NCBI GenBank assembly: GCA_024704765.1
Contig: JAKMXF010000365.1
Location: forward strand, 124,001 to 188,000
Direction: 5' to 3'
DNA length: 64,000 nt
Source: Oopsacas minuta
Taxonomy: Eukaryota > Animalia > Porifera
Shown: positions 10,486-50,816 of the stretch, piece after piece
How positions within the stretch are numbered: the stretch's first letter is position 1
Layout of the letters: every line of letters starts with the position of its first letter
Translations under genes and position numbers: made by a program
The notes under the pieces: model-generated
Seen by the model: only the letters and a program-made list of their open reading frames with translations
The model's database searches: none
Told to the model about the DNA's origin: nothing

Positions 10486-10639
10486 TTTACTTCTAATTAT
10501 ATTCGTAATTGAGAATTGAAAATTTATATCTCAAAAACCATAACCGCAATCGATTAGGTCAAAAAAGCAAATAAGTAGCTGAGGACATGAACCTTCCTAG
10601 GAAACACTTTTGGGGACACTGTGTAGAAATTCGGGCGGG

Positions 10640-14904: not shown

Positions 14905-14937
14905 AATTTCTATAATTAGTAACAAATAAACAAATTA

Positions 14938-15036
14938 CAGTAGACTCTGCTTATACACATCTTTCATAGAGCTACCGGTTAATCGGGTCACAATGGTCTC
15001 TGATACCGATTAAACTCTATTAAGCAGAGTCTAATG
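14938..15036. mobile_element. Tc1/mariner/pogo-type MITE (family C)
   Basis: TIRs CAGTAGACTCTGCTTA and TAAGCAGAGTCTAATG (15/16 match), flanked by TA on both sides. Confidence 0.85.
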
Positions 15037-15433
15037 TATTTCAAAGATTGTATGACTTTAAGAGCTTTACTGCTTTGTTAAAAGTATTAATCACTATTAC
15101 AATAATAGCACACGAGGATAATATGTTGAGTATTCTGTTAATATAGCAATCGATTCTTCAGTCTAAGCAACTAATGTGGCAATTGTGACAGGTTTTCGAA
15201 TACTTTTGTAATCACGTTCTGTTTATGTGTCCTGAAATATTGCGCCAAATAAAGTATATAATATAAATGAGGTTATTTTGATTCATGTCCCAGTTTCCAT
15301 GGTTACCTCGTTGGTATTTGGCTATACCCCTCAGAGAGGGAGGGTATCATTGGTCTACTATTCTACTTATTTTAGAGGTAACTAATTATAGGATAATTTA
15401 ATTAAGAAATATTATTAATATTAAGCACAGGAA

Positions 15434-16685
15434 TTATGAAGAAAATATTTGTAAACAGAAATTTATGTTATTAGATACACAAATAAGTTTTGTGTTATGT
15501 ATTGCTATGCCTCTAGGGGAGAACAACATTCCAGCTTTGTGTCCTTCCTGTCCTATCCTGTGTAGGAGGTCTCCTTCTGGTGAGAATACTTTGATTTGGT
15601 TAGCAGAGCAGTCGCTAATGACAATGTTATTGTGTCTATCCAAACAGAAGAAGTATGCTCCTTGAAATTTCATTCCTATTCCTCCTCCAGTAACTAAGGA
15701 GCGGGACTTCTCTCCTGAGAGAGTATACACGTGTATACACGGATTGTTACTTCTACTCAACACAAATATTTCATTTTTTGTGAATTTAACATCCTCAGGT
15801 TCGCTCATGGTTTTGTGTTCTAGCGTGTCTTTAAATACCAGATTAGTTGTTAGAATTTGTAGTCTGTTGTTGTTATAATCTGGCACATGAAGGTGTTGAT
15901 TAGGAGAGATGGCGGGTTGTCTTGGTTGATTGAACTCTTCACTACCAGATCCTCTCGTACCTACTCGCTTTATCATAGTTAGGTCTGGTAGCTTGAATAG
16001 GAAGATAGCGTGATGTCCTATGTCTGTGACATAAATGTTGTCCTCATGTATTAGGATACCCCATGGCCTCTCCAGGTGTTGATATCCGAATTCGTTTAGA
16101 TAGTCTCCTGTCTGAGAGAATATTTGGATTCTTTTGTTGCCATCATCTGCCACATAAATGTGTCCAGATTCTGTCTCGATGGAAATACCAGCTGGGTATT
16201 TGAGCTCTCCCTGTCCTGATCCAAATTTCCCAACAGCAACAATGGGTTGTTGGAATGTAGCATAATCTGGGATTGCCACCATAGGAGGGATGAGAGATAT
16301 TTCATGTTGGGTTATTTCTCCCAGACGAGCGATGCTTTCCTCGAGGTGGTGGTGCATTGTGGTGGAGTTCTTTCATTTTAGCCTCCATCTCTTCGACTAT
16401 TTTCTCTTGGACGGAATGAAGCATATTATGAGTCATTCGACCTTCCACAAGAGCTCGGGTCTCATCCAGCTGTTGCTTCATCTGTTCACGAGTCACCAGA
16501 TTAGCTATGATTGATTCTCGTTTTTCTTTTAATGTGGCTAAGAGATGGACCCGTCTCTGATTTAGGAGGAATATTAACTTGTCGATTGACTGGTTAATTT
16601 CTAAGGCTATTGGGTCGATATGTGGCACTGGAAGTGGTTCAGGCAGATGTGACACTCCGATGGTTTCTGGGAATTGTGTCGCCAT
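15434..16685 (-). pseudogene. Frameshifted coiled-coil plus NHL gene, paralog of the gene at 2-970
   Basis: ORFs 16685-16302 and 16357-15434 are one gene split by a 35-bp deletion at about 16340 relative to the copy at 20-61. Confidence 0.8.
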
Positions 16686-17151
16686 GATTTGGTCAATTAT
16701 TTGTTAGTTGTTTGGTGTGAATTTGTGAATATTATTTGTTTCAAATATAACAGAATTTATAGTTTCTATTGAATGAATATTTTCAATAGAAAACCGCTGA
16801 ACTGACACAATTATTAAAATAGAATTATTCTCAGTGGTTTGTGTCGTATTCTCACTTCCATGAACTCTGTTCTTGTGACACAATCTAATCCCAGAAGTTA
16901 TTCCATAATTCGATAAGTTTATTGTGTCGATGTCTGTTAATTAAGCCATTTAGCTAATTGATTATTCCATCACATTCCAAGCAACCAATTTGGTTACTAA
17001 TTTGCATTGTAAACCCTGAAATCTGATTCGCTGAGATATTGGTTATCTTTCTTTATGAATTATATTATTTTCAGACTCAGGGTGCGCGTTCACACCTCAA
17101 AATTGTACCCTTCCTAATTACATATCTTAGTACAAGGTTGATATGTATACA

Positions 17152-17275
17152 CAATCAACTCTTGTTTTATCTAACACGGAAATATCAAACTACCCGCCTA
17201 ATTCGAAGTGTGAACTTGTACAAATATGGTCCCAAACCCGCCAAGTAACATAAATTTCATCGGTAATATCGAAGT
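17152..17275. mobile_element. MITE family A copy, inverted relative to the 10871-11037 copy
   Basis: Reverse complement of the family A core. Confidence 0.7.
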
Positions 17276-17460
17276 TCAAACGACACGTGACTCAAATTCC
17301 CTAAATTTTGACATATCACCTCCTGTGTCACGCTTCTTCACAGTTTTTTAAACATAAATAACAACAGATAATACTACTAATTCAATTATTGATAATATTT
17401 ATGATATACCAGTAGCGAATAGATGAATACAGATTTTACATCAAAGAGATTGGGTTGCCT

Positions 17461-22517
<5,057 letters not shown>

Positions 22518-22798
22518 TCAATTTGGGTTATGACACTATAGTCTCTTGTAATTATCTTATAATGAAAACAATGAGTCACTCGTGGGTTTTATGTCTCGAT
22601 GAAATTTGTGAACCCCCTCCCATAGACTGTAATACATATTTTGAGATCATGTGCACCCCTTACTGTCATCCGTGGACCACTAAGGGGTCAATAGAATTTT
22701 ACAAAAATGTGTCCCAAAAGGAATAAACATTTCACATAGCATAAATATCTAGAAATTCTGTTTACCACAGCTAAAAAACAAACAACGAACGACAATCT

Positions 22799-23122
22799 TT
22801 ACAAACGCGCCAACATTTTCGCTAACTCCCCACTCTTGTCAAGTTTTTGTAAATCAGAACATCCGCCTATATGTTTCCCGCCTATAAATATATTAGGCAC
22901 TGTACGCTGATTGGTTAGATCATCTAAAGCATCCTGTATTTCATTCCCATCACGTATAACATCGAGTTCCTTTATGCCTACACTTTTTGCTTTATGCTTT
23001 TTGAAGATGTCCTTGGCCGCGTCACAAAAATGGCAATAAGTTTTGCTATATACCATTACGTTATTGGCGCGTATTTCCTTTTCTACAGCTAGCTTTGTGG
23101 CTGTTTCTGTGGCTGATGCCAT
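22799..23122 (-). CDS. GLRX: Dithiol glutaredoxin, single exon
   Basis: YSKTYCHFC, TVPNIFIGGKHIGGCSDL. Confidence 0.95.
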   Translation of the reverse strand: MASATETATKLAVEKEIRANNVMVYSKTYCHFCDAAKDIFKKHKAKSVGIKELDVIRDGNEIQDALDDLTNQRTVPNIFIGGKHIGGCSDLQKLDKSGELAKMLARL

Positions 23123-23337
23123 TTGGTTTTGATATTTGTGCTATTGTATTATTAAAAAGTTAGTAAAATATCTCTAAGACTAAAAATCCAATTTAGATAC
23201 TCAAAATTACAAAAATGTAGGTTAGAATGCCCTCTTTCCGAAAATATGAGTTACGAGACAATTCATCTGATTATAACACCTATAATCTCGGTCTTAGTAA
23301 TCAATAATTAGATTATAATATTATTAGCTAAACACCA
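23123..23337. promoter_or_regulatory. Probable bidirectional promoter between GLRX and PRCC
   Basis: The two start codons face away from each other, 215 bp apart. Inferred from arrangement only. Confidence 0.5.
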
Positions 23338-24144
23338 ATGGCTCTTGTTGGTTACGACTCTAGTGACAATTCTGATAATTCAGAAAATGAAAATATTGAA
23401 ATAAAACCGATAAAAGCAACAAATAAATTTCTATCTTTACCAACGTGTGATTTTGACGAAGAGGATGACGCGCATTTTAACAAAATTCTTAACAAAACAG
23501 AAAAACAACCAAATTTGAAAGAAACAAACAAAAAATCAGGATTAATGAATTTACTTCCAAAGCCGAAATCTCTAATTATTTCAAATTCAAAGTTAAAATT
23601 AATCCCTCAATCAGTGAAAAATACAAAAAAAGAATTAATATCTTCTCAAAACGAAGAAATTCCTTTCTTCAGTTTTGTTGAAAAAAAGAAAAAAGAAATT
23701 CCATCGAATTCTATTCCAGAAAATGAAAAACTGAAACTACAAAACTCTGCTAGATTCGGTTACGGTAAATACGCCATCCAACCGATAGAAACACAGGCAT
23801 TTCCTAAACCTGTAGAAGTACCAGAACGAACCATGGATAATAACGAAATAGATCTGGTTATGACAGGCGGCAAGCGAAAAAGACCGATCCAAATGGAAAA
23901 TATCGTGGACATCAGTCAGGCCGATTTGATGGGAGATATTGAGCTAATCCAGTCTAAACGACTAACTGATGAAGCCGATTATATGTCACAAATTCCAAAG
24001 ACAGAATTTAGCGGACAACAAAGACGAAAACATCAAATGACCTATCTTGCATACCAAGCCAAAGAGAGAGAACTTGAACTTAAGAATCAATGGGCAGCGA
24101 ATAGAGCAAGTCAAAGAGAGACAAGAAAGAAGTATGGATTCTAA
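23338..24144 (+). CDS. PRCC: PRCC-like protein, single exon
   Basis: N-terminal MALVGYDSSD, LPKPK, and C-terminal QRRKHQMTYLAYQAKERELELKNQWA.NR..QRETRKKYGF. Confidence 0.92.
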   Translation: MALVGYDSSDNSDNSENENIEIKPIKATNKFLSLPTCDFDEEDDAHFNKILNKTEKQPNLKETNKKSGLMNLLPKPKSLIISNSKLKLIPQSVKNTKKELISSQNEEIPFFSFVEKKKKEIPSNSIPENEKLKLQNSARFGYGKYAIQPIETQAFPKPVEVPERTMDNNEIDLVMTGGKRKRPIQMENIVDISQADLMGDIELIQSKRLTDEADYMSQIPKTEFSGQQRRKHQMTYLAYQAKERELELKNQWAANRASQRETRKKYGF

Positions 24145-26329
24145 TTATATACAAAATTTGCTATACATATTGGTATTCTACTGTTTGAATATTGTAACGA
24201 CAGCAGGGGGGGGTCACAGAATGTGTTAACATTGGCATATAGGGGTCCACTGGTGAATAAGGTTAGGGACAGTTGTTTTAGCAGGATCAGGTTTCTGCAA
24301 GGGTTATTCAATTGGTATTACTCCAATTAATATGAACAGATTTTGACCCGTGTGCTGGTGTTCGTATTAATGAAGTTATTTGTAATTCTGAACAAAATTT
24401 ATGATTTTGAATGATCGAAGCTTTTAATACTGCCTTAGGCAAATTGGCAGGATTATCAACATTTGTGTTTACTTGAAAATAATAGCTAACAGTAAACAAA
24501 TGTTGATGTATAATAGTGATTACTGGGACAAATTGATCAAGTGTTATCTAAAAAATTGATCAAATGGGCGTATAGTGATCAATTGATAATATACTAGCCT
24601 AGACTAATGATTGGCATGCTTCGTTCCTGCAGAATTATCTACTAACATATTTTAGTAAGAAGAAATTTCAAACTTCCTGGAGGCATAAATTCCTTTAGGG
24701 GGTGCTTGTATGGCCCCCATGAGGGCAAGGAGATCCTTATGTGCCAACAGGCAACATTAGCTATACCGTAATTATGTAAATGAAGCTATTTTTAGGAAAC
24801 GATATTCATTACATATTCCTTTTGCCACATGGACATATATTAATTTTCGTATTATACACAATATAAAACGCGCCTAAAATGACATTACGCGCCTAAAAAT
24901 AATATTACGCGCCTAACTACAGGATATATCGTTTATTTGACACCTAGTTACAGCAATTTCAAAGGTCCCAGAAATATAGAATTGGTTGAAATACAAAATT
25001 ATCAAATATAAGATTGATAAATCAACTTCATATGAGACCGTCGATTTAAGGCATCTACTGAATCGACTCAGAGGTTTTCAAGGTGTTTGTCACACGATAT
25101 GGCACTCAAATTTCAGTAAATATATTCTTATGCTCGCGGTAAATATGATATAAAAATAGTAAACAGAATTGTGAACTCATTACAATTCAAAACAACATAC
25201 ATATAGTCACTAATTGAGCTAATTCTTAGTTAATCAAGTGATCTGTTTGCAATCCATTCATCTTATCTAGAATAAAAGTTGTTTATTAATATTTTAGGTC
25301 CAATTATGACCCCATGGGTACATATTGTCCTGTATTAATGTACCCTTGTGGCCACTATAAACAGAAATAAATATAGAACAAATGTTACTGAATTGAAAGT
25401 TACATTTTAGCGCCAAGAATTAGCGTCCATCGCGAAAATATTCACTTCCTTTTGCGCGCCTGAAGTAGGATATTACGCGCCTTAACTTGCAAAACACGCG
25501 CCAAATAACAAATTATCAAAATTTAAAACCCCAACTTCCTTGAATTTCCTCTCTCCATTATTACATGTACAATTTGACAAATGTGACAAATAACCCGAAC
25601 AGCTGATCCAAATTTCAAATCAGATTGTTATGATAGTATACCCTCATCTATTTTCAAAGTATTCCACTAACAAATAAGCCAGAATACGGTATGATTTGTG
25701 TGAAGTAAATACAAGAACATGTGTATACATAATTATTAACATGTATACATGAAGAGGAAATATATTTGATAAAAGATACACTATTAGATTATCGATCAGC
25801 TGTTTTTATCATCTCACTATAGATTGTAATTAAACTCGACTTGTTATTAAATATTTCAGTTAATAGCGTCCCTAAGTTTGCGCCGAATGTTATTCAGATA
25901 ATATAAGCCATGTGAATAAATAATTTAATTATGGCGCCACAATTAATAAATAATCTCCCCGCACGTTCTCTATTTTCTAGACGAGAAAAGATAAACTTGA
26001 TTAGCCCGCTGCGAACTACGAATAAAACATATGTTTAATACATTACGTCGGAAGTTTATCGTTATATTATAGTTATTTTAAAATATGCTTAGCCGAGTGT
26101 TATGAGAACTATTATAGCATGTAATCCATGCATTGAACAAATTGACTCAAAATTCCATCCAAAAAGTATGTATCGAACATTTCTTGGCTCAATCTATGGC
26201 GCTTGATATACCATTTATGCAATTATTACACAACTTGTAGACATTTCAGAAATGTATTCACATATTCAAAGCTTATTAATGACATTTGCTGCATAAAATT
26301 CAATGCAAATAAACTATTTTCAGAAGTGA

Positions 26330-26845
26330 TTATAATGTAAAATTGTCAGTTTGAGAGGGGAAGAAGGTGTAAGAGGGAGAACTTATGTTCCGTTTTATCT
26401 CACTAGGGTCGATTGGTTCTGTTTTAGGTGTCAAAAAGTTTGAAATTGGGAGGAAGGTATGTTGAAGTTGTGGGTAAGCAACAATTGGTTGACTTTGAAC
26501 CATCTTTTTGAATTTGGCACTCTCTGTAATTAATTTTGTCTTTTCATCAATTAACTTTTGTTTCCTCAAATGTAAAACTCGAATTTCAACTTCCATATCT
26601 GCCATTTGTTGCTGTTCACGAGCGCGGAAATTCTTGCTATATTTCCTGACTTTCACGCGTCTTCTCTGTTTAATAACTTTTTTGATCTCATCATTCGATA
26701 ATCCTTTTTTCTTGGCGTCCTTCCTCAATCCTGCGACTGTATACGGAGCTAAATCATCATCCGTGAATCCGTAAATAGCCTTCTGTTCGGCTGTATAGTC
26801 CATATCATCAATTGTTGAACTCGAATATTCTGACGAGACTGACAT
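26330..26845 (-). CDS. Atypical Maf/CNC-like bZIP transcription factor
   Basis: Extended homology region FTDDDL..TV..L......GLSNDEIKKVIKQRRR, a basic region, and heptad repeats downstream. First ATG is at 26845. Confidence 0.8.
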   Translation of the reverse strand: MSVSSEYSSSTIDDMDYTAEQKAIYGFTDDDLAPYTVAGLRKDAKKKGLSNDEIKKVIKQRRRVKVRKYSKNFRAREQQQMADMEVEIRVLHLRKQKLIDEKTKLITESAKFKKMVQSQPIVAYPQLQHTFLPISNFLTPKTEPIDPSEIKRNISSPSYTFFPSQTDNFTL

Positions 26846-27236
26846 TTCGAATATTTTCAATTTTGTTTATGTGTTTGATAAAAACAATCCAAAACATTCG
26901 TTTATATACTAAAAAGACTGAAAGTAATTTCGAATATTCATAGAATTTATTTGGATATTCCAAGTTAATTAGAAATATATTAGTTTCAGTTAGAATATGG
27001 TGTCTAAGTGTTTTACTTTCAAATATGTCTCAGTTCTATTCTATTAGAAATGCTATCTTTGCAGAACTTTGACAGATAATCTCTACCTGAGCTGAGTGGA
27101 CACTATTTATGATAACTTAGCTAATATGATATAGCCGCAGTTATTCCACAATTTGCAGAGACACAATGCAAATATCTCACAGTGGTTGGGCGGGGAAATG
27201 CCACAATATAATTGTTGATATTTGAGCATAATACTA

Positions 27237-27330
27237 CAGTGGGTATCGCTTATAAGAACACATTTTGTTACCCCCAAAAGTGTCCTTATAAGCTTTAAGT
27301 GGCCGATTACAACGGTTATTCCATTCAACT
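27237..27330. mobile_element. Family C-like MITE remnant
   Basis: TA-CAGTGGGTATCGCTTATAAGAACAC start, with an internal inverted GTGTCCTTATAAGC. Confidence 0.5.
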
Positions 27331-28476
27331 GCCACTTTTGACCATCCCCAGAGTATTATAGCAAGCTTCGAAATGGTTAACACCTTCTTAATTAATATAT
27401 AAACCACCTACAAAGCCCATTTACCAACCACTTTATTTATAATTTAATTATTATCTGTTAATCTTTTGAGAAAATATTTATTTGATTCATATCTGGAACT
27501 ATGGACTTGAGCGGTCTTTATAGTTCCAATTAGTATAATATTTGTGTTATGTGTGTGTATATAGGTGAACGCGCCTCTATATAATTTAGTATTGTTTCAG
27601 AGCAGAACAAATGATGGATGCTAATTATTTTGCTCCACTAATGTCAGGAAAAGCTCATCGGATTGCTACAGGGAAATATTTTAACTTAGTAACCATATTA
27701 CACACAAATATGTATTTATTTAGCGCTTAAATTTACACAATCATTATTTTAAGCGCGCGAGTAAGTATTGCAAAGAAATGGCGCTATTTTAATTAAGTAA
27801 AAATAAGAAAAATTGACAAAAGTTTGCGAATTCTAAAATTAGTTTTCTATTCTTACATCTGTAAAATTCAAAAGTGTCTAAGAATTTTGAACTTAGTCAT
27901 TCCAAACCGCTAATTTATAACAAGAAACATGTGTTGAATGGAATTTGATATAAAATATGTGTGGAAATCATCTTTGGTTAATTGCGTTTAATAATTAAGA
28001 ATAATTAACAAATCAAGACAATTTGGAATATTTATCTTTCAGGAAATGTGATTTCGTGTTTAACTGATTTGTAAAAAATTATACTCAAAAATATCAAAGT
28101 ATGCATTCGTTAATTTTTATTTTCTAACTTGTGACATAATTCACAGATGTTATACTGCAAATCAAACCACAAATTGAACTTTAATTCAAAGCTTAAATAT
28201 ATCGTAAGGAAAATGAATTACTTTTAAACCATAAACAGGAAGTCAATAACAACTCAGAAAGTGTTAAATACGCGAAAAATTGGTAAACAGCTGATTAAAC
28301 CTTTTGATATATAGCACACATTTCTGTTGAATATTTTATATTTCTCTGGCTAGTGACATAGCAATCTTTAGCGTGCATGTGCCGCACTAACATATTGCTT
28401 AATACCTGGTAGAAAATGTGGCTGCAACTTGTCAAAGCCACAATCTGTAGCTATAATACACAATAAATATTGTTAC

Positions 28477-31400
28477 TTACTTAATTACAGGTTCGGTTTC
28501 CATGACGCATGTCTCTTCTGAATCTCGGTTTTGTATAAATTGTTTGAAAAATTCTTTACATTCTTGGAATTCTCCCAAGCTTTGATCTACAAAAATACAT
28601 TCAACATTTTTACACCTTCTTTCCAAGAGGTGTGAAATTCTGATTCCGGTCCCAACTTTCTATACCCATTGGTTCATATCCAAAGGGAACAATCACTAAA
28701 ATTATTTCCATAGTATCAGTAAACTCCCGTCATATCGAATCTGAAGGGACCGTGATAATTACTGCGATATGACCGATAGAATATATGCTACTTTGACGGT
28801 TTGGGACCATATTTGTACAGTTTCACACTTCAATGTAAGCGGGTATTTCTATATAACAGGAGTTGGATGCACTAAGTAATTTATTGACTGACTCATGAAT
28901 TATGATAATGACTATTTTGATATATTTTTTACACTTTTACATATTAACTACACACATAATAAAGTGTATAAATAACGCAAAAGTATCCATTCAGTCACTC
29001 CTTAATATCCAGTTTTAAATACACAATTAGATCAAGCAAACCCTACAGATATCATTATATTTCAAATGCTAACAAAAAGTAATCACCATTACTTACACAG
29101 GAAATTAACTTCCAATATTAAAAACAGGCGCTATCGCCGAAAAGACTTATTTACAAACAAACCTTAATTTTCATAAAATACTTTATGATAAGCGAATTTT
29201 AATTGAATTCTCAGCTAGATTGTTCTACGAATTAATAATTAATTTACCGAATAGTTCAAAATACGTTTTAATTACAAGAAACTTATTATTTTGTGGCAGC
29301 TAATACAAACATAAATATACTTATTAAGATGATATTGCCAATTATTAGCCTCTAATTTGGATTTTTGTCGATTGTCATTCACAAATAAGTTTTAGCCTGA
29401 ATTTATTAATATTAATTTTAATAGCACCACAGAATAAAGGAGAATCATACAATGCTAATGATAGAATTCGGAAATTCATATCAATAATTATATGTAGAAG
29501 CGGCGCTAATTAATTAGTGAATTAGCGCTTATTGAATTTGTTTAAAAATAGAATTTTCGTATGTAAATTTTAATTTATATGATTTACGACAATCCTCTTT
29601 CTCTCTTAACCAATCAAATTACAGCCTCAGATAGGCATACAACGTTAAATTTAGTCAATAGAATAGCTGGGTAAACTCAAATCTGATAGGTCAAGACAGT
29701 TTGTCACCTATCTCAGAGATATATGAAGATTTTGCCCTGATATTAAGGAATGCTCATACTTTTATCACATTCCACACGCACAGTAAAATTCAAGTTTGTA
29801 GCTCATACCAGTTTTTCAAAATCTCGATCATTTTAAACCGCGATAGGAACTTTAATAGTGTCAGAATAAAATATTTAAAATCATAATAAACAAATACAAA
29901 AATTTCTAAAGGATGATTAACAAGTAACTGAACTTGTAATTACATGTATAGATATCGCAGCCATATGATACCCAAAGTCTAATAGCACATATGATACAGT
30001 CAACCAAGTTTCTACAAATTACATACTTGTGATAAATGGAACAGTAACAAATTAGAAAAAATGGTTGAAAGTGGCGATTATGTATTGAAATTGTGGCGAT
30101 AAATTGGAAGAAATATATTAAAATAGGTTTGTTGTTGAAAACACTACATTCATAGCCTAAGTTAGTAATTCAAATCGTAGTTTCGATTGTACATATAACA
30201 CTTGGACAAAATATGACGTCTTGTGCACCTAAAACATAGGGGTCGAAAGAGGACCTGTCCTATCAATGGATTAACAAGGTGGTCGCCTAGAGAGGAACAA
30301 TAGTTGTCGGGATTTTGTAATAGTGAAATATTATTCCACTATAACCATTGGAGGCAGTCGAACTTGTTACTCAACCATTCTCTTTGGTTTCCCGGCAACA
30401 AGCCTAGGGATGTAAGCGTTTAATATTACATCGTAATCATAACATCACATAATTAGATTATAAATTTGATGCAAATTGAATCTCCTCTTGAATAAAAAGG
30501 CCACTGTTAATGAGAAACTTGTTTCAGCTCCACATGAGTCCAAATGAGCACGGGCTTGCGGACTGGAGATTCATTATCATTATCTCATATTTTGTGATGT
30601 ATCAGCTGGAAAAATTCATTATTGATAAAAATATTAAATGACTAAAGTCAAATTTGAGCTAGAGGAGGAAAAGGTATCTACATCGGATAATTAGAAGGTT
30701 GTGTACTCTGCAGTCGAACCGTAATGACAATGTTCCTGTGGTAGCCACATGTATCCAACTAACAGTGGACTCAATTACCTCCATCTTTTTGATCACTCAT
30801 TATCAGATCCCTATAGACAAGAAAATGAAGTAAAGAGCAATTTTCCGAATGTCCGCACAGGGCAAAAGCATGTATGCATAAATCTATAAATGGTATTATC
30901 TTAGCAACCAACTATACCAACAACTATTCAATAAATGTGTTAGCTATTTTGCCACGTATATACAATATATTAGCTGAATAATCATAACTGATATTTAGAC
31001 AAAACACAGGAATAAAGTCTACAAAAATAGAGATAGCGTCCAAATGTATGCACATATAATATTCTGTGGAGTAATACCCCAATTGTCTCATTATTATATT
31101 ATAATGGAATATACAGACTTTTTAGATGTACATTTGTGAGAAAAATCTATGCGAAAAGGTGTCAAATGTTCTAGTACGTGGAGTGAAGAACTGTCCAGGG
31201 TCACTCCAATTATATCGAAGCTTAAGAGACCGTGATAATATAACAGATGTTACTTTGACGGTTTTGGTCCATATTTGACAATTCACACTTTGAAATAAGC
31301 ATAGTCACATACTTCTGAGAAATTTATGATTACTAATTATGTTTACAAATACTGAAAATATTTACATCGCTAAATACGTAAACAATAATCAACGGATTAA

Positions 31401-34400: not shown

Positions 34401-37400
34401 CAGTTTGCTCTGAGACTTCAACATGAAACCTATATTTTTTGTGTGGATTAGTTTGTTGTTGTTTGCATGTGATATATATTTGTTTACGATATTGCATGGA
34501 TGTAAACAATTAACTTACTTAACTGTGACAACTTTATCCGGGTTGAATTTTACCGCTTTGGTGTAGTCAATGGGTACACATACTCTACCTGAATGAATAA
34601 CATAAGCCTACTTATAAGACCCAAATCATATTGGTCAGAATAATCCAAGTGCATATAGTATAGAACAATTCTGCCCAATAGGATTGCAGGGTTTTATACC
34701 TGTTTTTGGGTGTATGCAGAAAGGACTTTTCAGTAAATGATTGATGCCTTTTGTGACGTTTGTGTCCAGACGAGGGTAGCAATATTGAAACATAATTTCC
34801 ATTAGAACTTGCTAGAAAAAAAATTTAATTGAATACACAGTAAAACCGATAGAAGGGGAGAGTTTAATACTATGAAAACCCGCCAATCTTTTGCCAAACT
34901 TTAACTGCCAAAAAGGCGTGAAAATATTCACTTTACATAGATTTCATACCCGAGGTACAAACTACACCAAAAAATGTACCAATGTGCCGATTTACATACG
35001 AATCGGTCTAGTAGATTTCTCAGGGCACTGCGGACAAACAGAAGTGCTGCACCAAAATATTAAAAAATTACATCAGAAGTCTTGAATGCAACAGATTTAT
35101 AATTTTCAATCAGCTGATTTTCTAATTCTTGCCATCTCTCAATTGAACTGTTAGTTCTATCACCTTGCTGGGACCAAACTTGTGCCAAAAATGTTCTTGT
35201 CTCTAGTAAATATGATAAATATTAAAAAATGGCGCAAAAATAATTCGGAGTATATTTTTAAATAATTATTTGTGGAAACAGCTGTAAAATAATTCTGCTT
35301 ATTAAATAATAATTGTAGAATATTAGCAGTACTTATGGATAAATCACTCTCTCGCTAATTAGATTAGCGAATAAATTGACATATTTGTATCATTCAAGTT
35401 AGAAATTGTGTCGCGGGTGCCTATCAAATTTCCCGCGTATTATATCCCATTTGAACCAATTAAATATCAGCATTGGTCCAATGAGTATACAGGCTCAACC
35501 AATCAAATTCTACCTTTGAAGTTCACTGAACATATAAATAGGAAAATTGTCATAAAAACAAACTTTCGTTCGGTATAAGAGGCAATAATTTCTTCCAGTT
35601 TTCTTTCTTGTCGAGTAGTCCCTGAGATTCCAAAACGTTGCCCCAATAGGTGTGAATTATGTGATAAGCGCGCCTAAATTCACATAAATAAAAAATCTTA
35701 AATCACTGTCTGTGTAAAACCCTACAATCTGATTGGGTTAAAATACAGAAGCATTAAAAGGTGTGAAAATATACACATTAGAAGTCTCCAATTGTCAGGT
35801 CCACATCTAGATATCATTACGAGTACACATGCCAAATTTGGTCTCTTAATCTCTAAAGGTGTGAACAGCAGAGCGAAAACAAATAATATACGAATTTATG
35901 TAAATTTCTTACTAATAGAACTATGATAAACCTGGGATAATGGTTCCAATTATAGTTCCAATTACTAGCATAATTTACAGATACTGATAATAATAATACA
36001 CACAATAATTCCATATAATTTATGGATTGAAATCAAATTAGAAATGTTCATAAAAGGCAAAATTATACATTTTATGATAACACAGGAATGTACACCTTCT
36101 CCTGTATATGTACATTTAATTATGTCAAATCTTTGTTCGTATTTAATTGGATTTTGCAGTTCAATTAAAGTGCTTTTTCACATAAAACGAAACACATATT
36201 CGCATAGCAACGTTTATAGTTAATTGGAATCTTATAATATAAGCATCAGCAAAATGTGGAAATATTTTTGACCAGTGTTTTCAAGGAACTGGTAAGAGCT
36301 ACGGACTTGAAATTTTGCAGGATAGTGTCCAGTGGTGGAACTTAAAACAGATTAGAATAAAAAACCGAAATATATAGAAACCACTGAGAAAAGGTGATAA
36401 AAAGTCCTAACCAATCAGAATAGAGGGTTTATCCTCGGCTGTAAGCTGATATTCTATTGGTCAATTAAATAATTATTCATATACACTCTTACTATAACAA
36501 TATTAATATATATGACACTAACAACCAATTTGTTACATCAAAATGTTCCAAAAATGCTAAAAGAACACAAATATTGATCCGAACTGTAATGCACTTCTAA
36601 AACGGATGGAAATACAAAATGAATAATCGAAGGATAGGACATGAATTTATGCTTAAGAATCTGGCGATTTTCGCCTCGACAAAACTAAATAAAAAGAGAA
36701 AACAATTAGAGAAGATATGACAAATAAAATTCAAATCCTTTTCATATAATAGGAATTACTCTTGAGATTAATATCCCAGGGAATATGAAATAATAAGAAA
36801 TGATAATTAAAAATGGCACTATGAAGTTTAGTTCCATATTACTGACAATTTATACAGGAAGAGAAATATCCATAATCATTATATGGATGAATACAAACAT
36901 CATTGTTACTCTGTAAACAACATTTCCCAAACATAGACAAAATTCTGGAAAAAAAATCCGAAAATAATTCCAGTTATTTTAATGGAATTTTTGGTCATTT
37001 TTGTTTAGAGAATTACAGCTGATTTTGAACCAAATATTTCAAGGTAATTTTTTCGCAAAGCTCATGGTAACAAAGTTGGTCCTTTGGGTCACTTAATTGA
37101 ACCCAAGAGAATCGAAATATAATCAAATATACTCCTAAAATACATATAAATGTGTCTACAAACAAACAAACAAATATTAATCAGGTATAAATCTTGGATA
37201 AGGTGGTGGCGAAAATACCTGAAGGCCAAACTTGTTGTTATGAGAAACACTCACGATCTTACCACCTGAAAATCCCAACCCACACGGACATACCAAAATA
37301 CCCTCTCCGTTGTCACCGACTTTCCCTTCGGCCAGTCTGAATATAATTTCTGACTCTCTCATAATTTTAATAACTCCGTGACCAAAATCGCTAATTACAA

Positions 37401-40400
37401 AATTCCTGTATGGGTCTATACAGAAGAAATATGACGTATGTATTTCTGACAATCGAATCGTACGAATAGTGTCTTCACTTTGCTTCATAATCTGAATAGA
37501 TGGTTTATCAGGATGACACAGAATATACATAACACTAAGTGTTACTTTAATATCAACTGGCTCAATGAAGACTTCGTTCCTAATCGCTCGCAGGAACTGG
37601 AATTCTGGGCCAATTACTTGTATTCTATTATTATAACGATCCGGTATATACAAATATCCTTTATGTGACAATCCAGGTTGGCTAGGAAAATTGAATTCCT
37701 CCTCCAAATCGCCGAGTTTCCCTGTTGCTGATATCAATGTCAAATCTGACTTCCTGAACATGAAGACGGTGTGTAGTTGTACGTCCGTTACGTAAAGATG
37801 AGTTCTGTTTACAGCGACCCCCCACGGACATTTCAAGAAACATTGTCCTATAATTGAAATTGGTTCCCCGTTCTGATTGAATATCTGTACGCGGGAGTTA
37901 CTACTATCAGCTATAATTATATTTTGATTAGTTACATCTACTATTAATCCACGCGGGACTTTCAAATTTCCAGGGTTATTTCCCTCTTTACAAACTGCGA
38001 TATTACTCTGATATACTCTGTAGTTCAATGCCTTTCGTTCTTCTGGAATTTCATTATTTGCCATCCTAAAATGTTTGTAAACACATACAATAGAAGAGGG
38101 ACGTCTTATCCGAGCTCTACTGTAGCTTATATAATGAATTTATTGAGGAAATGGTAAGAGTTACAAACTTGAAAATTGGCATATACGTATGTGGAGTAAT
38201 GATATGTTTAGAAATCTATGCCTACATCTACTTAAGTCTCGCCCAAGCGTTTAAGACAGCGGTTCCCAACCCAGGGTCAATGACCTCTTATTGGTCTACG
38301 GACGACAGCAGGGGTTAAAACCTTCAGTAAGTGAACACCCTAGGGACCAGTCTAAAAGTTCACATTTCATGGCATTGTGTGTAGGGACCGAGAAAGGTGT
38401 CATCTTTTAGAGGTTTACCTTATCATTCACAGTTACGAACTACTTTCTGGTTCCAATTGATTATTCATATTAATAATATGCATAAACATAAGTAAGGAAT
38501 ATGATACTTAACTCAAGTTTCCATGTAATCTTCATCACATATTATCAAATTAATATCACAGACTAATTATTATATTCCAAGCTGATTGCAGTTTTAAGAA
38601 AAATTCAATTTTTAAAATGGCGGCTATTTTAATTATTTGTACCACAATTATGGTTAAATGGCGCCCAATAAAACGCTCGTATAATATAACGATATCACTT
38701 ACAGTTAGAATTTGTGGTGTTGTTATATTAATTGAAAAAATGGCGCCTAAAATTAAAGATGTTACAAAAGCACGTAATTGATTGGTTAAACTTACTAATT
38801 AAATGGTTGCTAGGTCACAGTGAAAATATGTATACTTTATATATCAAAACTCGATGCTTTCTTGGACTTCTGTGCGGAATTTATTGATGAACTGGTAAGA
38901 GGTGGAAACTTGAAATTTGGCACGTGTGTGGGAGGTGATAAATTTAGGGACAAGTTCTAAGAGCTAAGAGATATCTCAAAAACTCACTGAGATAGGTGTC
39001 AAAATGTCCTGACCTATCAGACTTTAGGCTCAAACAAAAATATCTGAAAGTGTCCAACTCAAATCGGGACAATTACCCTATGGGACAGGCTGTTAATCAT
39101 AAATATGTATATACCTGAGTGCGGGATATGTTGGATTCTTCAGCATAACCTTCTTTACCATTTTATCACCACCCTAAGTAAACAAATATACACGAATAAA
39201 CACAAATACACAAAAAGCAAAAGGAATCTCGTAAATCAATGACTAATTTTATGCAATTTGGAACTAAGTTTATAGTTCCAATTGACACTATCTTTCCTTA
39301 ATCCTCGAATCTGATTGGGCTATACATTTTTCGGAAAATCTCCAAGATATCTCTTAGAAATTATAAATTTTCTAGAAACCACAATTTGGCTAATTTGGCG
39401 GGTTTTTAAATAATATTTGTTGTTTATGAACTATTGAGTATTCGCTAGAATTTGTGTGGTAAATAGTTGAGAGTGTTTAGACATTATTAATATGTGAATA
39501 ATTGGTTTTCACACCTCAGTAATATTGGTAAACAAAACCTAAACAATTAGAATTTCTCAGAAACAGATGACAGATCTATTATAGATACATTTTTGGATGT
39601 CTTGTAATTATCCTTTCGTATTTTAGTTCCATTTTATAGACAAAATTGAAAAAATACGGAAAATAAATTTATTAGCATTACCCAACACCTAAACTCGTAC
39701 TTTTGGGTCTCGCTTGACCCCCTTATTGGAACTGTTATTTATGTGTTCTCTTGTTACACACCTCAAGGAATATGGTCTCAATACAAATAAAGCGTAACCT
39801 CGATAATACAAATAACAACGGACTTGTTCGCGGGAGTTACTATTAATTCGGCAATTTTAATCAGCTGTTTATTGATGGTTACATTTGCAGATTAAGCCAC
39901 AATTAATGATTGTAAATGGTTCCCCGCGTTTTTTTTAGGTGTAAAAATAATTGATTGCAATGTGGCCATTTATAATATTGTTGTTGTTGTGATTAATAAT
40001 AATATTTGATTAGTTTCAGTTCCATTAATAATATAGTTTCAATTTTGAAATGAATATATTATGATATAATTTCAATAATGAATTACAGCTGTAAAAATAT
40101 GATTTAACACTTTTTGACACTTTTGCATGTTTCCTGTTTATTTGGTTGTTATAGGAAAATTGTTTGTGTTGTTGTTTACAAATTTGTTAGTAATGATTCT
40201 TGGGTGACTTTTCGTAGAATAAATGAATCAATTTATTGCCTCAGACAGGTGTGAAAATGTGTATAAACCAAATTCATTTCAACCAATAGAATATCGCTGG
40301 GTAAACCCTCAAATCTGATAGGTCAAAACATTTTGTCACCTATCTCTGAGAGTTGTGGAGATATCGGTTAGATATTAGAATTCATTCCTAGATATACCAT

Positions 40401-45416: not shown

Positions 45417-48400
45417 TTACTGTAAATTCTCAGACGTGATAGAATTTATTTCTTGTGATTTTTTGGTTCGGACGAGAGCCCCGTAATCTTCTGCAGGTGA
45501 AATTGGAAGTGAAGATAGAGATAGTTGCAGATTATCACACCTTTTGTTAGTGCCATTTTTAGTTTCCAAGGTGTTACAAGTTAGACTAGGATTAGTTATA
45601 TGTTTGAATTCTATCTCCAAATCATCTCCAGTTAGTCTCTGCTTATGCTAAAAGAAGACAATTCGATTGTAGGAGTTCCCAACCTTTGCACCTGTGGACA
45701 CCCCTCCAAAGTACTGCGATACAAATTTTCAGCTCATGTGGACCCATTAGTGTCGTCCGTGGACTATCAAATGATATATGGACCACAGGTTGGGAACTGT
45801 TGTTGTTTTATCCCTCACCACCCTGTCCGCACTGAATATACACTTTGCCCCAGGTGTATGGATATGGATTCATACACTATACTTGTGGATTTGACACCAC
45901 TTAACACGGGACAGGGGTGAGGTTATTGAGAAGTGACAATCCCTATCTTCACGCCTAACTGGAGGAGAGGGGAAGACACAAAAAGACAGGATTACCTTTC
46001 TATCCGTACAAGGAAGTAAAGTATTTTCTCCTTTCCTCTTTTCCTCAGGTTTTGGCGATCTTTTGAAAGCATTTGGCAGTGAATTTAGTGAACTAAATCT
46101 CTTATGAATCTTACCAATAGCACTCGGAGCTATTGGTTCTTCTAATGTTCTAATTTTCTTTATTTTAACGCCTTTATCTTTGGATTTTCCTTTCAGACCT
46201 AACCCTGATGCCAAACTTGAAATCGCATTCTTTCCAGAGGTGTCTGAGTTGACGTTTACTTGTTTATGTTTGTGCTTAGATATTGTCTTTAGTGTTGGAG
46301 TTTCTACAAAACACATTTGAATATTGGTATATGGATGGGACCTCAAGGAGTCGAAATTACCTGTCGTAGAAATATTAACCGGACTGGCGTATAATTCAGG
46401 TGAACTATCTGATCTGAGTCTATTAATTTGATCATTATTAGTTGTAGGGGATTCCTGGAGAGGTGACAACCTATCTGTTACAGGTTCTTTGTTTGTTGCA
46501 GAGCTATTCGACCTACATGCATACTATCATTTCCCGTTATATCTTAGCTCAAGGGACCGTGATAATTACTTGGATATGACCATGGAATATATGTTACTTT
46601 GAGGGTTTGGGACCATATTTGTATAATATCACACTTCGATATAACTGGAGTTGAGTGAATTTATATAAAAAATTGTACGATTTTTTGCATTATTTGGCAG
46701 AATTTATAGAAAAACTGGCAAGGGCTACTAAGATGAAATTCGGTATGTGGGTGTAAGGTGATATATCTAAGGAGATGTCCTAATATTAAACTAATATCTC
46801 TACAATTTTCTGAGTTAGGTGACAAAATATCTTGACCTATCAGATTCGAGAGTGCACTAACTATCGCTCGAGGCAAGCACATGGGCCTTCGAAGGTTCCG
46901 GAAAGGTGAGATGGTGTGAAAGATATGCTATATGTGTCTGGATGTCTCTTATTGCTATTTAACACACAACTATTCCAAACCTTGTTGCTGTGTTCGCCTT
47001 TGATTTGTTCTTAATTATCAGTTTAGAAGGTAGAGTGTCAGATGGTTTCTGTTCCAGTACGGATTTCTTGAAGATTTGTACACTACGTGGCAACGAATTG
47101 TGGTCAAAGGATAGTGAAGATGCAATAGGACTCGCGTTACAATCATTTGCCTACAAGAAAGTACAGATTTTCAAAAGTTATATAATAAAAAGTGTTTTTT
47201 GCAGAAAAGGTTGCGTCAATTTTTCAGGCATTTGAACTGGGTGCGTACCGTGATAATTTTTGGGGTGTTAGGTCGGCTTCCCTTCTCAGAGGGAGGCTGG
47301 GGGAGGAATCTGGAACTATTTGGGGTCTTTTGATTGGACAGGTCACTGGAAATGGAGATTGATTGGACAGGAGGAGGCTCTGCCTGACTGGGAGTAGTTG
47401 GGACGGAACTTTCTGGAGTTCTGTCCCTAGGGGGTCGAGTTGGAAACTGTTCCATCAACTGTCTACAAATAAATTCATAATATAATTGGAATACCCTCGA
47501 ATCTGATAGGCCATGACGTTTTGACACCTATTTCAGAGAGTTTATTATTATTATTATTACCTTGATGTTCTCAAGGCTGTGTCTTTGGCAAGTTTGGCTC
47601 TCGTTAATTGTAGTGATAGATCCCTAAACAAATATGTATATAAACAACAACAACAACAACATAACAACAACAAACTCACTTTGCCAGATCAACAGCATCA
47701 TTTCTCTCATTTTCAAACTCAATTAATGTAATCTGTAATTCTCTAAAAATTGAATCAAAATCACCCCAGCTGGAATATTGTGAAGTATTTGACAATTCAT
47801 AACCTCACCCCAGAGGGGATGTTCAAAGTTCAAATCCACAAGTAAGGTGCATTGATCCTCTCCTCACATGTATAGGACCAATTTTTACATATTCCAACAC
47901 TTAGTTCATCAAGTTAGTAACTTACCTTATTTTTATTTTAAGTTTGTTGACGTGAGAATTTTTCTCAGAAATTATTAATAAACTTTCTTCCAACTGTAAT
48001 CCATCCTAATAAATAATAACAAATTTGAAGAGCTATAAATGTAAATAATAACAATTACCTGTGTTGCTTGAACTAGATTTGTGTGTTTAGATTCAATTGC
48101 ATTAATCTTCAAGCTTAACTCCTGAAGGAAATCACATTTAATACGAGCATACATGGTCTACTTATGATAGAGACTGTTTGCTGTATATTCATGAAAACAA
48201 CAATAAATTTTCATATGAGAAACTTGAAAATGGGAAATTCGGATTCAGCGTACTTTGTTGCACCTTGTAGCTGTTAAAAGTAACTCTCCACCAATAAATA
48301 ATTACACATTTTCGCTAATTTGTTTATTTACATACATAGAAACAATACTAACTCTAAGTTCCTGTTGTTGTTGAAAAATTGTTTGTTGGTAACTTGGCAA

Positions 48401-50816
48401 TAGCTGCAATGCTTGATCCCCATTCATTCTTATTCCAATACGCTGTGCGCCAATTTTGGAAGCTTCACCCAATTCAACATCTCTGCTATATTCACACTAA
48501 ATATGATAAATGCAAATAAATAGAAGAAATAAACAATTTCTTAATTGGTAAACCCTCAAACCTGATAAGTCAATACATTTTGACACCTATCTCAGAGAGT
48601 TTACGAGATATCGCTTAGATAATAGAAGTTCATCCTAGAATAATCACATTCCATATACCTGCCAAATTTCACGTTTGTAACTCCTACCAATTCATCCATG
48701 GTTATTTCACGTATTTGAACTATGCATACAAATTCCTAAAATACCTTAGTTACCAATAATACCTTAGGAATGTAAGGGTATATCAGTGATTTGGCTTTTG
48801 GAAGCGAATCCTCATCAGTAAAACTCTGAGAATCAGAAGAATCAGGAATTACTCTACCCTGGTTACCAGATGTAGCCTTAGGAATGTCATTCATACTCTT
48901 AGAAATTCTATCATCAGGCAGGATTGCATTGAGTATCGCCTTGTCCTCTGGGGTCACAGGAAGTTTGTTCCCCTTCATTCTGTGGCTCAACAATGCACTA
49001 CGTACCTAGATAAAGCAACAAATAATGTGTTGCAAGTGTGAAAGTGGCAGAGTGGCATAAAGGAGGGTTGCAAAGATCACTGATAGTTACTTTCCCCGGA
49101 ATCGAACCAGGTAATTACAATTTCCAGTCGTACGTTTTCCCATTAAACTAAAAAGCGAAGTAGTGATCTTCATGGCCTCCTTAAACAACCATAATTTCAA
49201 ACTATATTTATACAGAAATGTGAAATGTAATCAATTGATGTGGTTGCATAATAAAAGCTAGAACTATTTTCTGTAACCTCGCAAAAAGTTTGCAAATTTG
49301 AATGTGGATGGCGTCATTGACACTGAACCAGGGGGGCAGGGGGCTCGTGGAGCATGGAAGCTGTCCAATATCCATGTATAGTTCGTAACAATTTGTAAAT
49401 GGAGCAAAAAGGAGGGTAGCAAGGATCTCTAGGGGGGTTTCTTTTTAAGGGGTCACCCATGTGTTTCAAATTAAACTAAAAAGCGAAGTAGTGATCTTCA
49501 TAGCCTCCTTATACAACCATAATTTCAAACTATATTTATACAGAAATGTGAAATGTAATCAATTGATGTGGTTGCATAATAAAAGCTAGAACTATTTTCT
49601 GTAACCTCGCAAAAAGTTTGCAAATTTGAATGTGGATGGTGTCATAGACGCTGAACCAGGGGGGCAGGGGGCTCGTGGAGCATGGAAGCTGTCGCAATAT
49701 CCATGTATAGTTCGTAACAATTTGTAAATGGAGGAAAAAGGAGGGTAGCAAAGATCACTGGGGTTTCTTTTCCAGGGATCGAACCAGGTAATTACAATCT
49801 TCAGTTGTATGTTTTTCCAATTAAACTAAAAAGACGAAGTAGTGATCTTCATAGCCTCCTTAAACTGGAATAATTTCCAACTATATTTATACAGCAAGAT
49901 GAATGATAAATAATCGATGTGGTTGGATAAAAATAGCTTTCATTCGTTGTAAATATTAATGGAATGCCACTAAATAGTCTTGTTCCAAATCCTGAAAAGT
50001 GAGCTGGAAATAGTGTGTTAACACCTTCAAAATTCAGGAAATGGAACCAGACTAAAAAGTTCTAAAAGGTGCCAAAATGGAGGGTGGCGCCGATCGTAAC
50101 AGACCTTTCCGGGAGTCGAACCCGGTTCTTATAATCCTAAGTTATATGTTCTCACCAATAAACCAAAAAGCAGAAGTAGCGATCAGCAAAGCCTCCATAC
50201 AAATACACTAATTTTCAAATCAGTTATACTACAAGTTAATTCAGAATATATGATGTGGTTGTATAATATATCAATGCAGATCCTCGGATATGATTGAATG
50301 AGGGCTTATTGGCCATATCTCGAAGAGGTGTGGAAATAATTTTTACATATTTTTGTACAAAAATAAAATTATAATTGGAAATAGAATTGAACTTACCTTT
50401 TCTTTTTTGAGTCGAAGTTGAAGTCTACTGTTCTGATTATTGGCAAACTTCAATTTTCGTTTGAGTTCTCCTTTCATTGCTTTTTCTTGCATCACCGAAG
50501 CTTCTAAGTTATTCAATCGGGCAATTACATCTGATTCTACTTCATTACGTCTTGATATACCCGTATTCTCAGTTTGCAGTGCCAAAACACTATCTTCTAA
50601 CTTTCTTATCCGTTCAAGAGCCATTCCAAGATTACTTGTTTGAAATGGTGGAACTTCAGTGATTATATCTGTGACACTTCTTACACCTGGATATGAGGAT
50701 GTGCCTATATTCTGGTCAACTGGCACATTATTATGTCTAAACTGGTTCAAACTAATATATGGATCCATTTGATAATATTTCAAAAATCTCGTTCTTATAA
50801 TATTGTAAATTGCCAT
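45417..50816 (-). CDS. Multi-exon coiled-coil/low-complexity protein of unknown function (host of the RNA array)
   Basis: Exon 1 50816-50397 (GTAAGT donor) splices in frame to an exon starting 49005 (VRSALLSHRMKG...). Further exon-like segments at ~48500-48350, ~48130-48060, ~47460-47240, ~46500-45900 and ~45620-45417. The internal structure is only partly resolved. Confidence 0.65.
45670..45802. mobile_element. hAT-like MITE (GTTCCCAACCT-type termini)
   Basis: Inverted AGTTCCCAACCT / AGGTTGGGAACT. Partial relatives at ~5575-5620, ~24195-24280 and ~38257-38330. Confidence 0.65.
46530..46656. mobile_element. MITE family A copy
   Basis: Family core, ending ATAACTGGAGTTGA. Confidence 0.7.
48545..48690. 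repeat. Dispersed repeat family B copy
   Basis: CCCTCAAACCTGATAAGTCAATACATTTTGACACCTATCTCAGAGAG...GCCAAATTTCACGTTTGTAACTC. Confidence 0.7.
49062..49180 (-). ncRNA. Stem-enclosed tRNA-like RNA, copy 1 (anticodon GGA)
   Basis: Minus strand: GGAGGCCATGAAGATCACTACTT, cloverleaf 49157-49087, then CTATCAGTGATCTTTGCAACCCTCC-TTT. D stem GTTT/AAAC, anticodon arm TACGA CT GGA AA TTGTA, T arm CCTGG TTCGATT CCGGG. Confidence 0.8.
49205..49251 (-). promoter_or_regulatory. U6-type (type 3 Pol III-like) promoter of copy 1: PSE-like element at -71..-56 and TATAAATA at -32..-25
   Basis: TTATGCAACCACATCA-like motif and TATA occur at the same offsets upstream of all four copies. Confidence 0.65.
49411..49508 (-). 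ncRNA. Copy 2, internally deleted (D arm and acceptor-like stem kept; anticodon and T arms absent)
   Basis: Same leader and trailer, followed by TTTTT. Inner sequence GCTTTTTAGTTTAATTTGAAACACATGGGTGACCCCTTAAAAAGA. TATA at 49540-49533. Confidence 0.7.
49740..49859 (-). ncRNA. Stem-enclosed tRNA-like RNA, copy 3 (anticodon GAA, Phe-like)
   Basis: Anticodon arm TACAA CT GAA GA TTGTA (anticodon 49802-49800), T loop TTCGATC, trailer AGTGATCTTTGCTACCCTCC followed by TTTTT. TATA at 49891-49884. Confidence 0.85.
50079..50196 (-). ncRNA. Stem-enclosed tRNA-like RNA, copy 4 (anticodon TAG, Leu-like, short variable loop)
   Basis: Anticodon arm TATAA CT TAG GA TTATA (50139-50137), perfect T arm CCGGG TTCGACT CCCGG, leader GCTGATCG pairing with trailer CGATCGGC, then ATTTT. 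Confidence 0.85.

Follow-up and report, generated by a model that had tools for sequence, protein, structure and literature searches.

How can three tRNA-like sequences with the anticodons GGA, GAA and TAG sit next to each other on related bodies in an animal genome? The question is raised by a stretch of 64,000 nucleotides from the glass sponge Oopsacas minuta (assembly GCA_024704765.1, contig JAKMXF010000365.1, positions 124,001 to 188,000 of the forward strand), hereafter called the window, to which all coordinates without a contig label refer. The sequences, which an initial annotation had pointed out as organelle tRNAs, mistranslating tRNAs or tRNA mimics, are real: ARAGORN calls them on the minus strand of the window at 49086-49157 (gga), 49762-49835 (gaa) and 50101-50172 (tag), and they reach 46.5, 48 and 51.3 bits with the Rfam tRNA model, for which the cut-off is 29. 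We consider it likely that they are the central domains of panhandle small-RNA genes with U6-type promoters, with vault RNA as the most likely type.

The three calls are embedded in four tandem units on the minus strand, of which three are intact (c1, c3 and c4) and one is broken (c2). Gene c1 (49058-49182) has a core at 49087-49157 with the loop CUGGAAA, gene c3 (49736-49861) a core at 49764-49835 with the loop CUGAAGA, and the more diverged gene c4 (50075-50198) a core at 50101-50172 with the loop CUUAGGA. Each unit is about 125 nt long and begins with AAGGAGGC, or ATGGAGGC in c4. One strand of an 8-9 nt helix and the motif CUACUUCG lead into the cloverleaf, after which come a stretch rich in pyrimidines, the other, complementary strand of the helix, GC(A/U/C)ACCCUCC and a T-run. 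The 5' side, from AAGGAGGC to YUACUUCG, and a 3' side that ends in GCAAYCCUCCUU make up a conserved panhandle, and the 5' and 3' ends are paired in the minimum-free-energy fold of every intact copy. The fold of c1 has a minimum free energy of -35.2 and a z of -2.69, with z values of -2.76 for c3 and -2.35 for c4, and these genes score 131.3, 123 and 113.5 bits, respectively, with the covariance model R1 of the family described below. The degenerate copy c2 (49404-49510) has an intact frame and promoter, but its anticodon and T arms have been replaced and helix P2 is broken (66 bits with R1, z -0.90).

Other features ascribed to these sequences need some adjustment. The AT-rich stems and the short variable loop are confirmed, with a whole-gene GC content of 0.39-0.46, as compared with 0.49-0.68 in the normal tRNAs of the genome, and variable loops of 4-5 nt (4 nt in c1 and c4). 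The description of the bodies as mitochondrial-looking holds for the stems only, since the D loop (GG) and the T loop (GGTTCGAnnCC) are of the canonical cytosolic type and correspond to box A and box B. It was also an overstatement to call the first and third copies nearly identical; they share 82% of their core and 86% of the whole gene, which makes two changes in a 7-nt loop unremarkable, and c4 is about 70% identical to either of them. Tandem Repeats Finder did not detect the array, whose units are too few and too diverged. What had been overlooked altogether is the panhandle, along with a promoter of its own in front of every copy.

This promoter consists of a box resembling the proximal sequence element (PSE), AACCACATC, at -62/-63 in every unit (49237-49245 in c1, 49565-49573 in c2, 49916-49924 in c3 and 50252-50260 in c4, all on the minus strand), and a TATA box at -30 (minus strand; 49206-49212, 49534-49540, 49885-49891 and 50222-50228, respectively), which reads TATAAAT in c1-c3 and TATAACT in c4. 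In the single U6 gene of the genome, AACCCATAT stands at -65 and TATATAAA at -33, so that box and TATA are spaced as in the array. In the three U2 genes there is an ACC box at -58/-59 and no TATA, and the U1 gene (C144:490666, where C-numbers are labels of contigs in the sponge genome) has GACCCTTAA at about -55. Because the promoter geometry matches that of U6 and differs from those of U1 and U2, the array units look like type-3 genes of RNA polymerase III (Pol III), as predicted from the promoter. The three U2 genes all lie on one contig (C111:108375-260857) and share the box (A)AACC(A/C)(A/T)A; taken together, the U1, U2 and U6 boxes give a first PSE consensus (WACCM) for the lineage.

The 3' ends point in the same direction. 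A T5 at 49735-49739 follows c3 and a T4 follows c4, and TTATTG is found as the end of relatives. The same end signals are found at the canonical tRNA genes, with exactly T5 in 30 of the 46 listed calls and TTATTG in five. These canonical terminators (loci L044-L087) are strikingly uniform, CTTTTT(G/A) within 0-7 nt. Box A and box B, the upstream TATA and PSE elements, the terminal panhandle and the U tail would together reproduce, in silico, the layout of a vault-RNA gene.

The array is not alone. We searched the sponge genome with BLAST, then with a pattern, and finally with R1, which was built from ten members; as the first pattern search for the frame gave 59 matches against 55 in a reversed control, members were picked by eye before the covariance model was applied. 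With R1, the family comprises about 20 genes: 13 with a tRNA-like core, two degenerate copies (c2 and C350:43346) and six with a non-tRNA core, in addition to one fragment. Outside the window, tRNA-like cores are found at C350:43830, C188:286813, C188:296108, C222:188703, C222:222428, C298:481133, C298:486203, C311:67268, C233:152218 and C362:115898, the last two of which have a long variable arm. The six remaining genes (C334:73789, C334:74483 and C110:524367, 559201, 559517 and 559812) have the same frame and promoter around an unrelated AT-rich core of 97-117 nt that contains no box B. The frame is common to the array and to loci on ten other contigs, and the columns that do not vary across the family are those of the frame, of box A (TAGTTTAATGG-like) and of box B (GGTTCGAnnCC). 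A tRNA-derived short interspersed element (SINE), with many dispersed, retroposed copies, an A-rich or simple-repeat tail and a purely internal promoter, would not look like this, the family having about 20 copies, a diverged upstream promoter that is conserved in position, an end in a T-run and no tail.

Covariation indicates that the fold is maintained. In a MAFFT alignment of ten cloverleaf members, with the structure derived from c3, 89.8% of the cells are paired and 23 of the 37 pairs have changed on both sides, as against 11.5 ± 1.9 in shuffled alignments (none of 500 reached 23) and 5-10 in slid controls. Compensatory changes occur in every helix, including five of five pairs in the anticodon stem and four of five in the T stem, which argues that the whole shape, and not the promoter boxes alone, is under selection as RNA. 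In c4, for example, helix P2 is compensated in spite of the approximately 70% identity to c1 and c3. If only the frame is considered, and the non-tRNA members and the metagenome relatives described below are included, eight of nine P2 pairs have changed on both sides, in a model-fitted alignment that leans to the structure by construction. In the outer helix (GGAGG/CCUCC), it is the sequence itself that is conserved.

A metagenome scan for the frame motifs returned 32 contigs, of which 29 were chance matches, and R1 identified full-length relatives on the other three, the marine contigs Ga0115011_10258373, Ga0115005_10127679 and PVBE011151344.1. One relative is located among six tRNA genes (L142:455-566), two are found at L166:1586-1659 and 1673-1786, and four tandem copies are flanked by genes for 5S rRNA and U2 (L167, PVBE011151344.1, 181-853). 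These relatives are richer in GC, have non-tRNA cores and end in CCUCCUUUU, and their P2 strands are wholly different yet complementary, such as GGGAAUGGG with CCCAUCCC. The search pattern required none of these features, and the frame is therefore older than the sponge. The gene density of two of the contigs is an observation in its own right: L142 has six tRNA genes and one frame RNA within 1.3 kb, and L167 has a 5S rRNA, four frame-RNA genes and a U2 snRNA inside 1.1 kb (7-1083). Both come from a marine eukaryote whose small-RNA genes are clustered very densely.

Do the cloverleaf cores decode? The triplets in the anticodon position of the 13 members are GGA, GAA, TAG, GAT, GTC, TTA, TGG, TTC, TGC, TGC, CAC, GCT and CAA, that is, 12 distinct triplets, among them the "stop" anticodon TTA. 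The triplets GGA and GAT are absent from the normal tRNA set of the genome as found here, which includes at least about 45 genes. The anticodon loop has 7 nt in all 13 members and its sequence is not conserved. The uridine at position 33 is present in nine of 13 members (A or C in four) versus 41 of 42 canonical calls (Fisher p=0.009), and the single canonical exception is a mis-parsed intron-containing gene. Likewise, the purine at position 37 is found in 11 of 13 members, with a pyrimidine in the other two, versus all 42 canonical calls (Fisher p 0.05). The initial annotation had proposed to tabulate anticodons across the genome and had held that a random distribution with loss of U33 and R37 would speak against decoding, and our tabulation comes near to this. 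The alternative that it had raised last, that of mimics with a constant loop geometry and a freely varying anticodon, is supported by the 12 triplets, the constant loop length and the covarying anticodon stem.

The ends of the cloverleaf also differ from those of a decoding tRNA. The 1-72 pair (columns 28 and 100 of the alignment) is unpaired in seven of ten members, the match of the type-II members to the tRNA model is confined to positions 3-68, and the acceptor stem continues into a conserved internal loop and the panhandle rather than into free ends. The real serine and leucine tRNA genes of this genome are 82-84 nt long with long variable arms, which both the "Ser" copy c1 and the "Leu" copy c4 lack. 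More generally, the canonical genes have a GC content of 0.49-0.68, scores of 54-72 bits, roughly one gene per anticodon and no frame; genes for Phe-GAA, Leu-TAG, Leu-CAA and Ser-AGA/TGA/CGA/GCT are present. A phenylalanine origin of the bodies was considered and could not be established: the best identities of the cores to their nearest canonical tRNA are 0.62-0.69, with c3 marginally closest to tRNA-Phe (0.65), and no core has a clear canonical parent. One member elsewhere in the genome (C188:296108-296237, L089/L110) has the loop CUUUAGA, which would be read as an ochre suppressor (TTA); it lacks a T-run and has a defect of one base in its outer helix. Calls of a suppressor tRNA by tRNAscan in this genome, one of which is listed as predicted in the genome paper (PMC10280926), are probably of this kind.

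Could the units nevertheless be precursors from which chargeable tRNAs, either mistranslators or specialised isoacceptors, are freed by RNase P and RNase Z? The covariance scores above the threshold, the canonical T and D loops and the retention of U33, R37 and 7-nt loops in c1, c3 and c4 are what would be expected of such tRNAs, and the anticodon loop and the T stem and loop of c3 are the same as those of tRNA-Phe, down to a U-U mismatch. We nevertheless find this very improbable given the frequent 1-72 mismatch, the 4-nt variable loops on a supposed serine and a supposed leucine tRNA, the loss of U33 and the stop anticodon in other members, the non-tRNA cores inside the same frame, and the canonical genes of far higher GC content and score that already serve these codons. 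The mistranslating tRNAs of the initial annotation are unlikely for the same reasons, to which the continuation of the acceptor stem into the panhandle can be added. Import of nuclear-encoded tRNAs into the mitochondrion, or a nuclear insertion of mitochondrial DNA (numt), was suggested by the AT-rich stems and by a short-armed Leu(UAG) like that of bilaterian-type mitochondria, and seems to us next to impossible. Of the tRNA genes, 22 are present in the published mitochondrial DNA of O. minuta (KR709158) and trnW alone is missing (PMC4520895), whereas no Trp anticodon occurs among the 13 members. There is no gap to be filled by imported Phe, Leu or Ser tRNAs, such as the lack of trnF, trnL(uag) or trnS for which the initial annotation had proposed to look, and GGA would be an odd anticodon for a mitochondrial serine tRNA. 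A COX1 search of the assembly did not find the mitochondrial genome. A plain numt is incompatible with an snRNA-type nuclear promoter and a conserved frame at every copy and on ten other, unlinked contigs, and the array is moreover placed in an intron of a nuclear gene. The three "tRNAs" of the window are almost certainly not working tRNAs.

A clue to the nature of the RNA comes from the vault RNA model RF00006, which was run at permissive thresholds below its gathering score of 34. In six members the alignment runs end to end over the model (1-99 of 99), and its limits fall precisely on the outermost bases of the frame, with 33.6 bits for the member on C311, 28.6 for C298:481133, 26.8 for that on C233, 26.0 for that on C362, 24.5 for c4 (50073-50198) and 22.2 for C222:222428. 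The C311 gene is the sole genome-wide match to the model (E=3.4e-4). The outer 6-bp helix and the 8-bp second helix coincide with those of the model, as do the 5' loop (CUUUA in vault RNA; C-UAAG, CUUAG or CUUUG here) and the 3' loop (GCUgU in vault RNA; GCUAC, GCAAU or GCGCUA here), and UUACUUCG (here C/UUACUUCG) takes the equivalent structural position after the second helix. Judged from the printed alignment, the match appears to go beyond a stem plus box B.

The sponge also encodes vault proteins. The gene for MVP is complete (855 aa, C350:69631-72198), intronless and has all five MVP Pfam domains, and a TEP1 orthologue with TROVE, NACHT and TEP1-type propeller domains is located on C210. 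In the mouse, TEP1 is required to keep vault RNA in the particle (reviewed in PMC7904556). We note that two family members, an intact and a degenerate one, share the contig of the MVP gene at a distance of only about 26 kb (C350:43346-43957), and that a second, fragmented MVP-like locus is found at C188:720521-721711. That the family represents the vault-type RNA of the sponge is a candidate identity which, on our analysis, we regard as an even call.

Several findings weigh against the interpretation as vault-type RNA genes, or at least call for caution. All RF00006 scores fall below the cut-off, neither c1 nor c3 matches the model at E<=5, which leaves c4 as the only aligned copy in the window, and the pairing of the third helix of the model (P3) is not kept in the family. 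Furthermore, the members without box B, in the sponge as well as on the metagenome contigs, do not match at E<=1, which suggests that much of the score comes from box B and a generic panhandle. A second gene with a TROVE domain (C3:1999-5319, L097), possibly Ro60, makes a Ro60 partner and hence an RNA of the Y type possible, or some other panhandle ribonucleoprotein RNA in which a protein-binding stem is combined with a tRNA mimic as in bacterial YrlA. The terminal stem next to a tRNA-like module does recall YrlA, and the Deinococcus Y RNA model gives a weak full-length alignment (19.2 bits, E=2). This alternative is nonetheless quite unlikely in our view, as the Y_RNA model RF00019 has no match at E<=5, the helix with a bulged C that binds Ro is not seen in the family, and the loop motifs and YUACUUCG fit the Vault consensus instead. 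The TROVE pieces on C3 are split by an open reading frame of 607 aa with PR/SET and C2H2 zinc-finger domains (C3:3025-4848), an arrangement explained either by one gene lying within an intron of the other or by a peculiarity of the assembly close to where the contig begins.

The remaining counter-evidence concerns transcription. An internal T5 is present on the 5' acceptor strand of all four window copies (minus strand; 49150-49154 in c1, 49478-49482 in c2, 49828-49832 in c3 and 50165-50169 in c4) and of two relatives elsewhere; it matches the Pol III terminator of this species and occurs inside no canonical tRNA gene, six of which have an internal T4. The 3' end of c1, CCCTCCTTTAT, ends in TTTAT with no T4 or longer run nearby, and its terminator is therefore weak or degenerate. 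The depth over the array in run X4, which like that over nearby intergenic sequence ranges from 0 to 60, is no higher than background, in data of a kind that cannot show structured small RNAs. Together with the broken c2, whose core is lost in spite of 97.7% identity between its upstream spacer and that of c1, these features may mean that this cluster is decaying within a family that otherwise functions, with tRNA-like pseudogenes that yield little or no full-length RNA. We regard this as a real but minor possibility: c1, c3 and c4 retain P1, P2 and all cloverleaf stems, have z values of -2.4 to -2.8 and are among the top R1 scorers, P2 has been compensated in the divergent c4, and an internal T5 common to members on other contigs would be an old, retained feature. 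Hairpin-assisted termination would reconcile the internal T5 with full-length transcription, which is speculation. Finally, the transcript could be a processing substrate: a tRNA mimic of the mascRNA kind would be cut out by RNase P and RNase Z, and the remaining duplex of leader and trailer (about 26 and 30 nt) would act as a small RNA. A weak match of c4 to the mascRNA-menRNA model (19.2 bits, E=0.75) and the paired, conserved leader and trailer are compatible with this idea, but the members with non-tRNA cores keep the frame without any substrate for RNase P or RNase Z and no sign of processing is seen in the data, which makes it improbable.

We therefore favor the interpretation that the units are genes for a panhandle RNA of the vault type. 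According to this hypothesis, a small RNA of about 125 nt would probably be made by Pol III from the external U6-type promoter, and each gene would end at the T-run directly after the panhandle formed by the 5' and 3' ends of the RNA. The frame, with an outer helix of 6-7 bp, an internal loop (CUUUA-like on the 5' side, GCUNU-like on the 3' side), a helix of 8-9 bp, YUACUUCG and the U tail, would be the functional, protein-binding module, for which TEP1 and the vault particle are candidate partners by analogy with the vertebrates. The cloverleaf would contribute box A and box B as internal promoter elements, together with a handle in the shape of a tRNA. It would not decode, which would explain how related bodies can have GGA, GAA and TAG. 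A bolder and more doubtful proposal is that the family consists of true vault RNAs, in a non-bilaterian animal, in which a complete tRNA cloverleaf is still enclosed, and that vault RNAs arose by the locking of a tRNA gene in a panhandle. If so, the frame in marine eukaryotes would mark an ancient, eukaryote-wide family of vault RNAs that current models have missed.

The whole array is contained in a 1391-nt intron (49006-50396, minus strand, GTAAGT...TAG) of a protein gene with the same orientation, and a spliced joint in run X4 supports this intron. None of the sequencing runs registered as RNA contains the stretch; X4, one of four runs in one study, behaves as RNA sequencing data, with spliced joints that follow GT..AG on the minus strand. 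The first exon of the host gene (about 50397-50816, approximately 140 aa) has no Pfam family, and further introns are located at about 48497-48762, 48121-48351, 47743-47925, 47463-47560 and 47150-47247. In the neighbouring intron, the segment 48169-48335 has a depth of 13,000-30,000 in three DNA-like runs, as against about 100 nearby, with many loose ends, and is a very high-copy repeat. Elsewhere in the window we observed four open reading frames with NHL repeats, predicted as six-bladed propellers (38-16357 and 37177-38064), a long myosin-I in a single open reading frame (1947-4985), a dihydrouridine synthase (13606-14925) and a homologue of PRCC (23338-24144).

These results have consequences for genome annotation. 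At least 13 of the tRNA predictions in the sponge genome are not decoding tRNAs, and inferences about codon usage or the genetic code from such lists would be misled; the suppressor tRNA listed for this species (PMC10280926) may itself be one of the members of the family. The frame provides a search tool that already retrieves relatives from metagenomes of marine eukaryotes. Conservation among vault RNAs is poor, and we found no paper describing a vault RNA in sponges or other non-bilaterian animals. The family is a candidate for the sponge vault RNA in two forms, with and without a tRNA cloverleaf as the central domain, and so has a bearing on the long-standing view of tRNA genes as the ancestors of vault RNAs.

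How do these genes compare with known systems? They share with the vertebrate vault RNAs (RF00006) a length of about 100-130 nt, a panhandle of the 5' and 3' ends, a U tail, box A and box B with upstream elements, the outer helix, the loop letters (GGC-UU(U)A-G on the 5' side, GCGCU or GCAAU on the 3' side), a second helix of 8-9 bp followed by UUACUUCG or CUACUUCG, and a genome that encodes MVP and TEP1. They differ in that the core is a complete, covarying cloverleaf, or an AT-rich hairpin without box B in six members, in scores of 22-33.6 bits, in the missing P3 and in the number of about 20 genes. Eukaryotic Y RNA genes have Pol III type-3 promoters and a U tail, and YrlA combines a terminal protein-binding stem with a tRNA-mimic module. 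The sponge family has a terminal stem, a promoter and a tail of these kinds, but not the bulged Ro-binding helix or a match to the Y_RNA model; the protein-binding stem of YrlA is placed differently relative to the tRNA-like module, whereas the panhandle in the sponge extends the acceptor stem. A non-decoding, tRNA-shaped module in a larger noncoding transcript is also known from mascRNA of MALAT1 and from the tRNA-like Pol III transcripts of gammaherpesvirus 68. In those transcripts the module lies at the 3' or 5' end and is cut out, whereas the sponge cloverleaf is enclosed by a panhandle that also occurs alone. The selenocysteine tRNA gene has a tRNA-shaped product and an external type-3 promoter with PSE and TATA, yet the ends of its tRNA are free, the anticodon is fixed and the acceptor and T stems have a 9/4 geometry, none of which is seen in the family. 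Lastly, remolded mitochondrial tRNAs in sponges present paralogous bodies with different anticodons, as the array does; they keep U33, R37 and the identity elements and replace a lost gene, whereas the members of this family coexist with canonical genes, and some of them break the rules of the anticodon loop.

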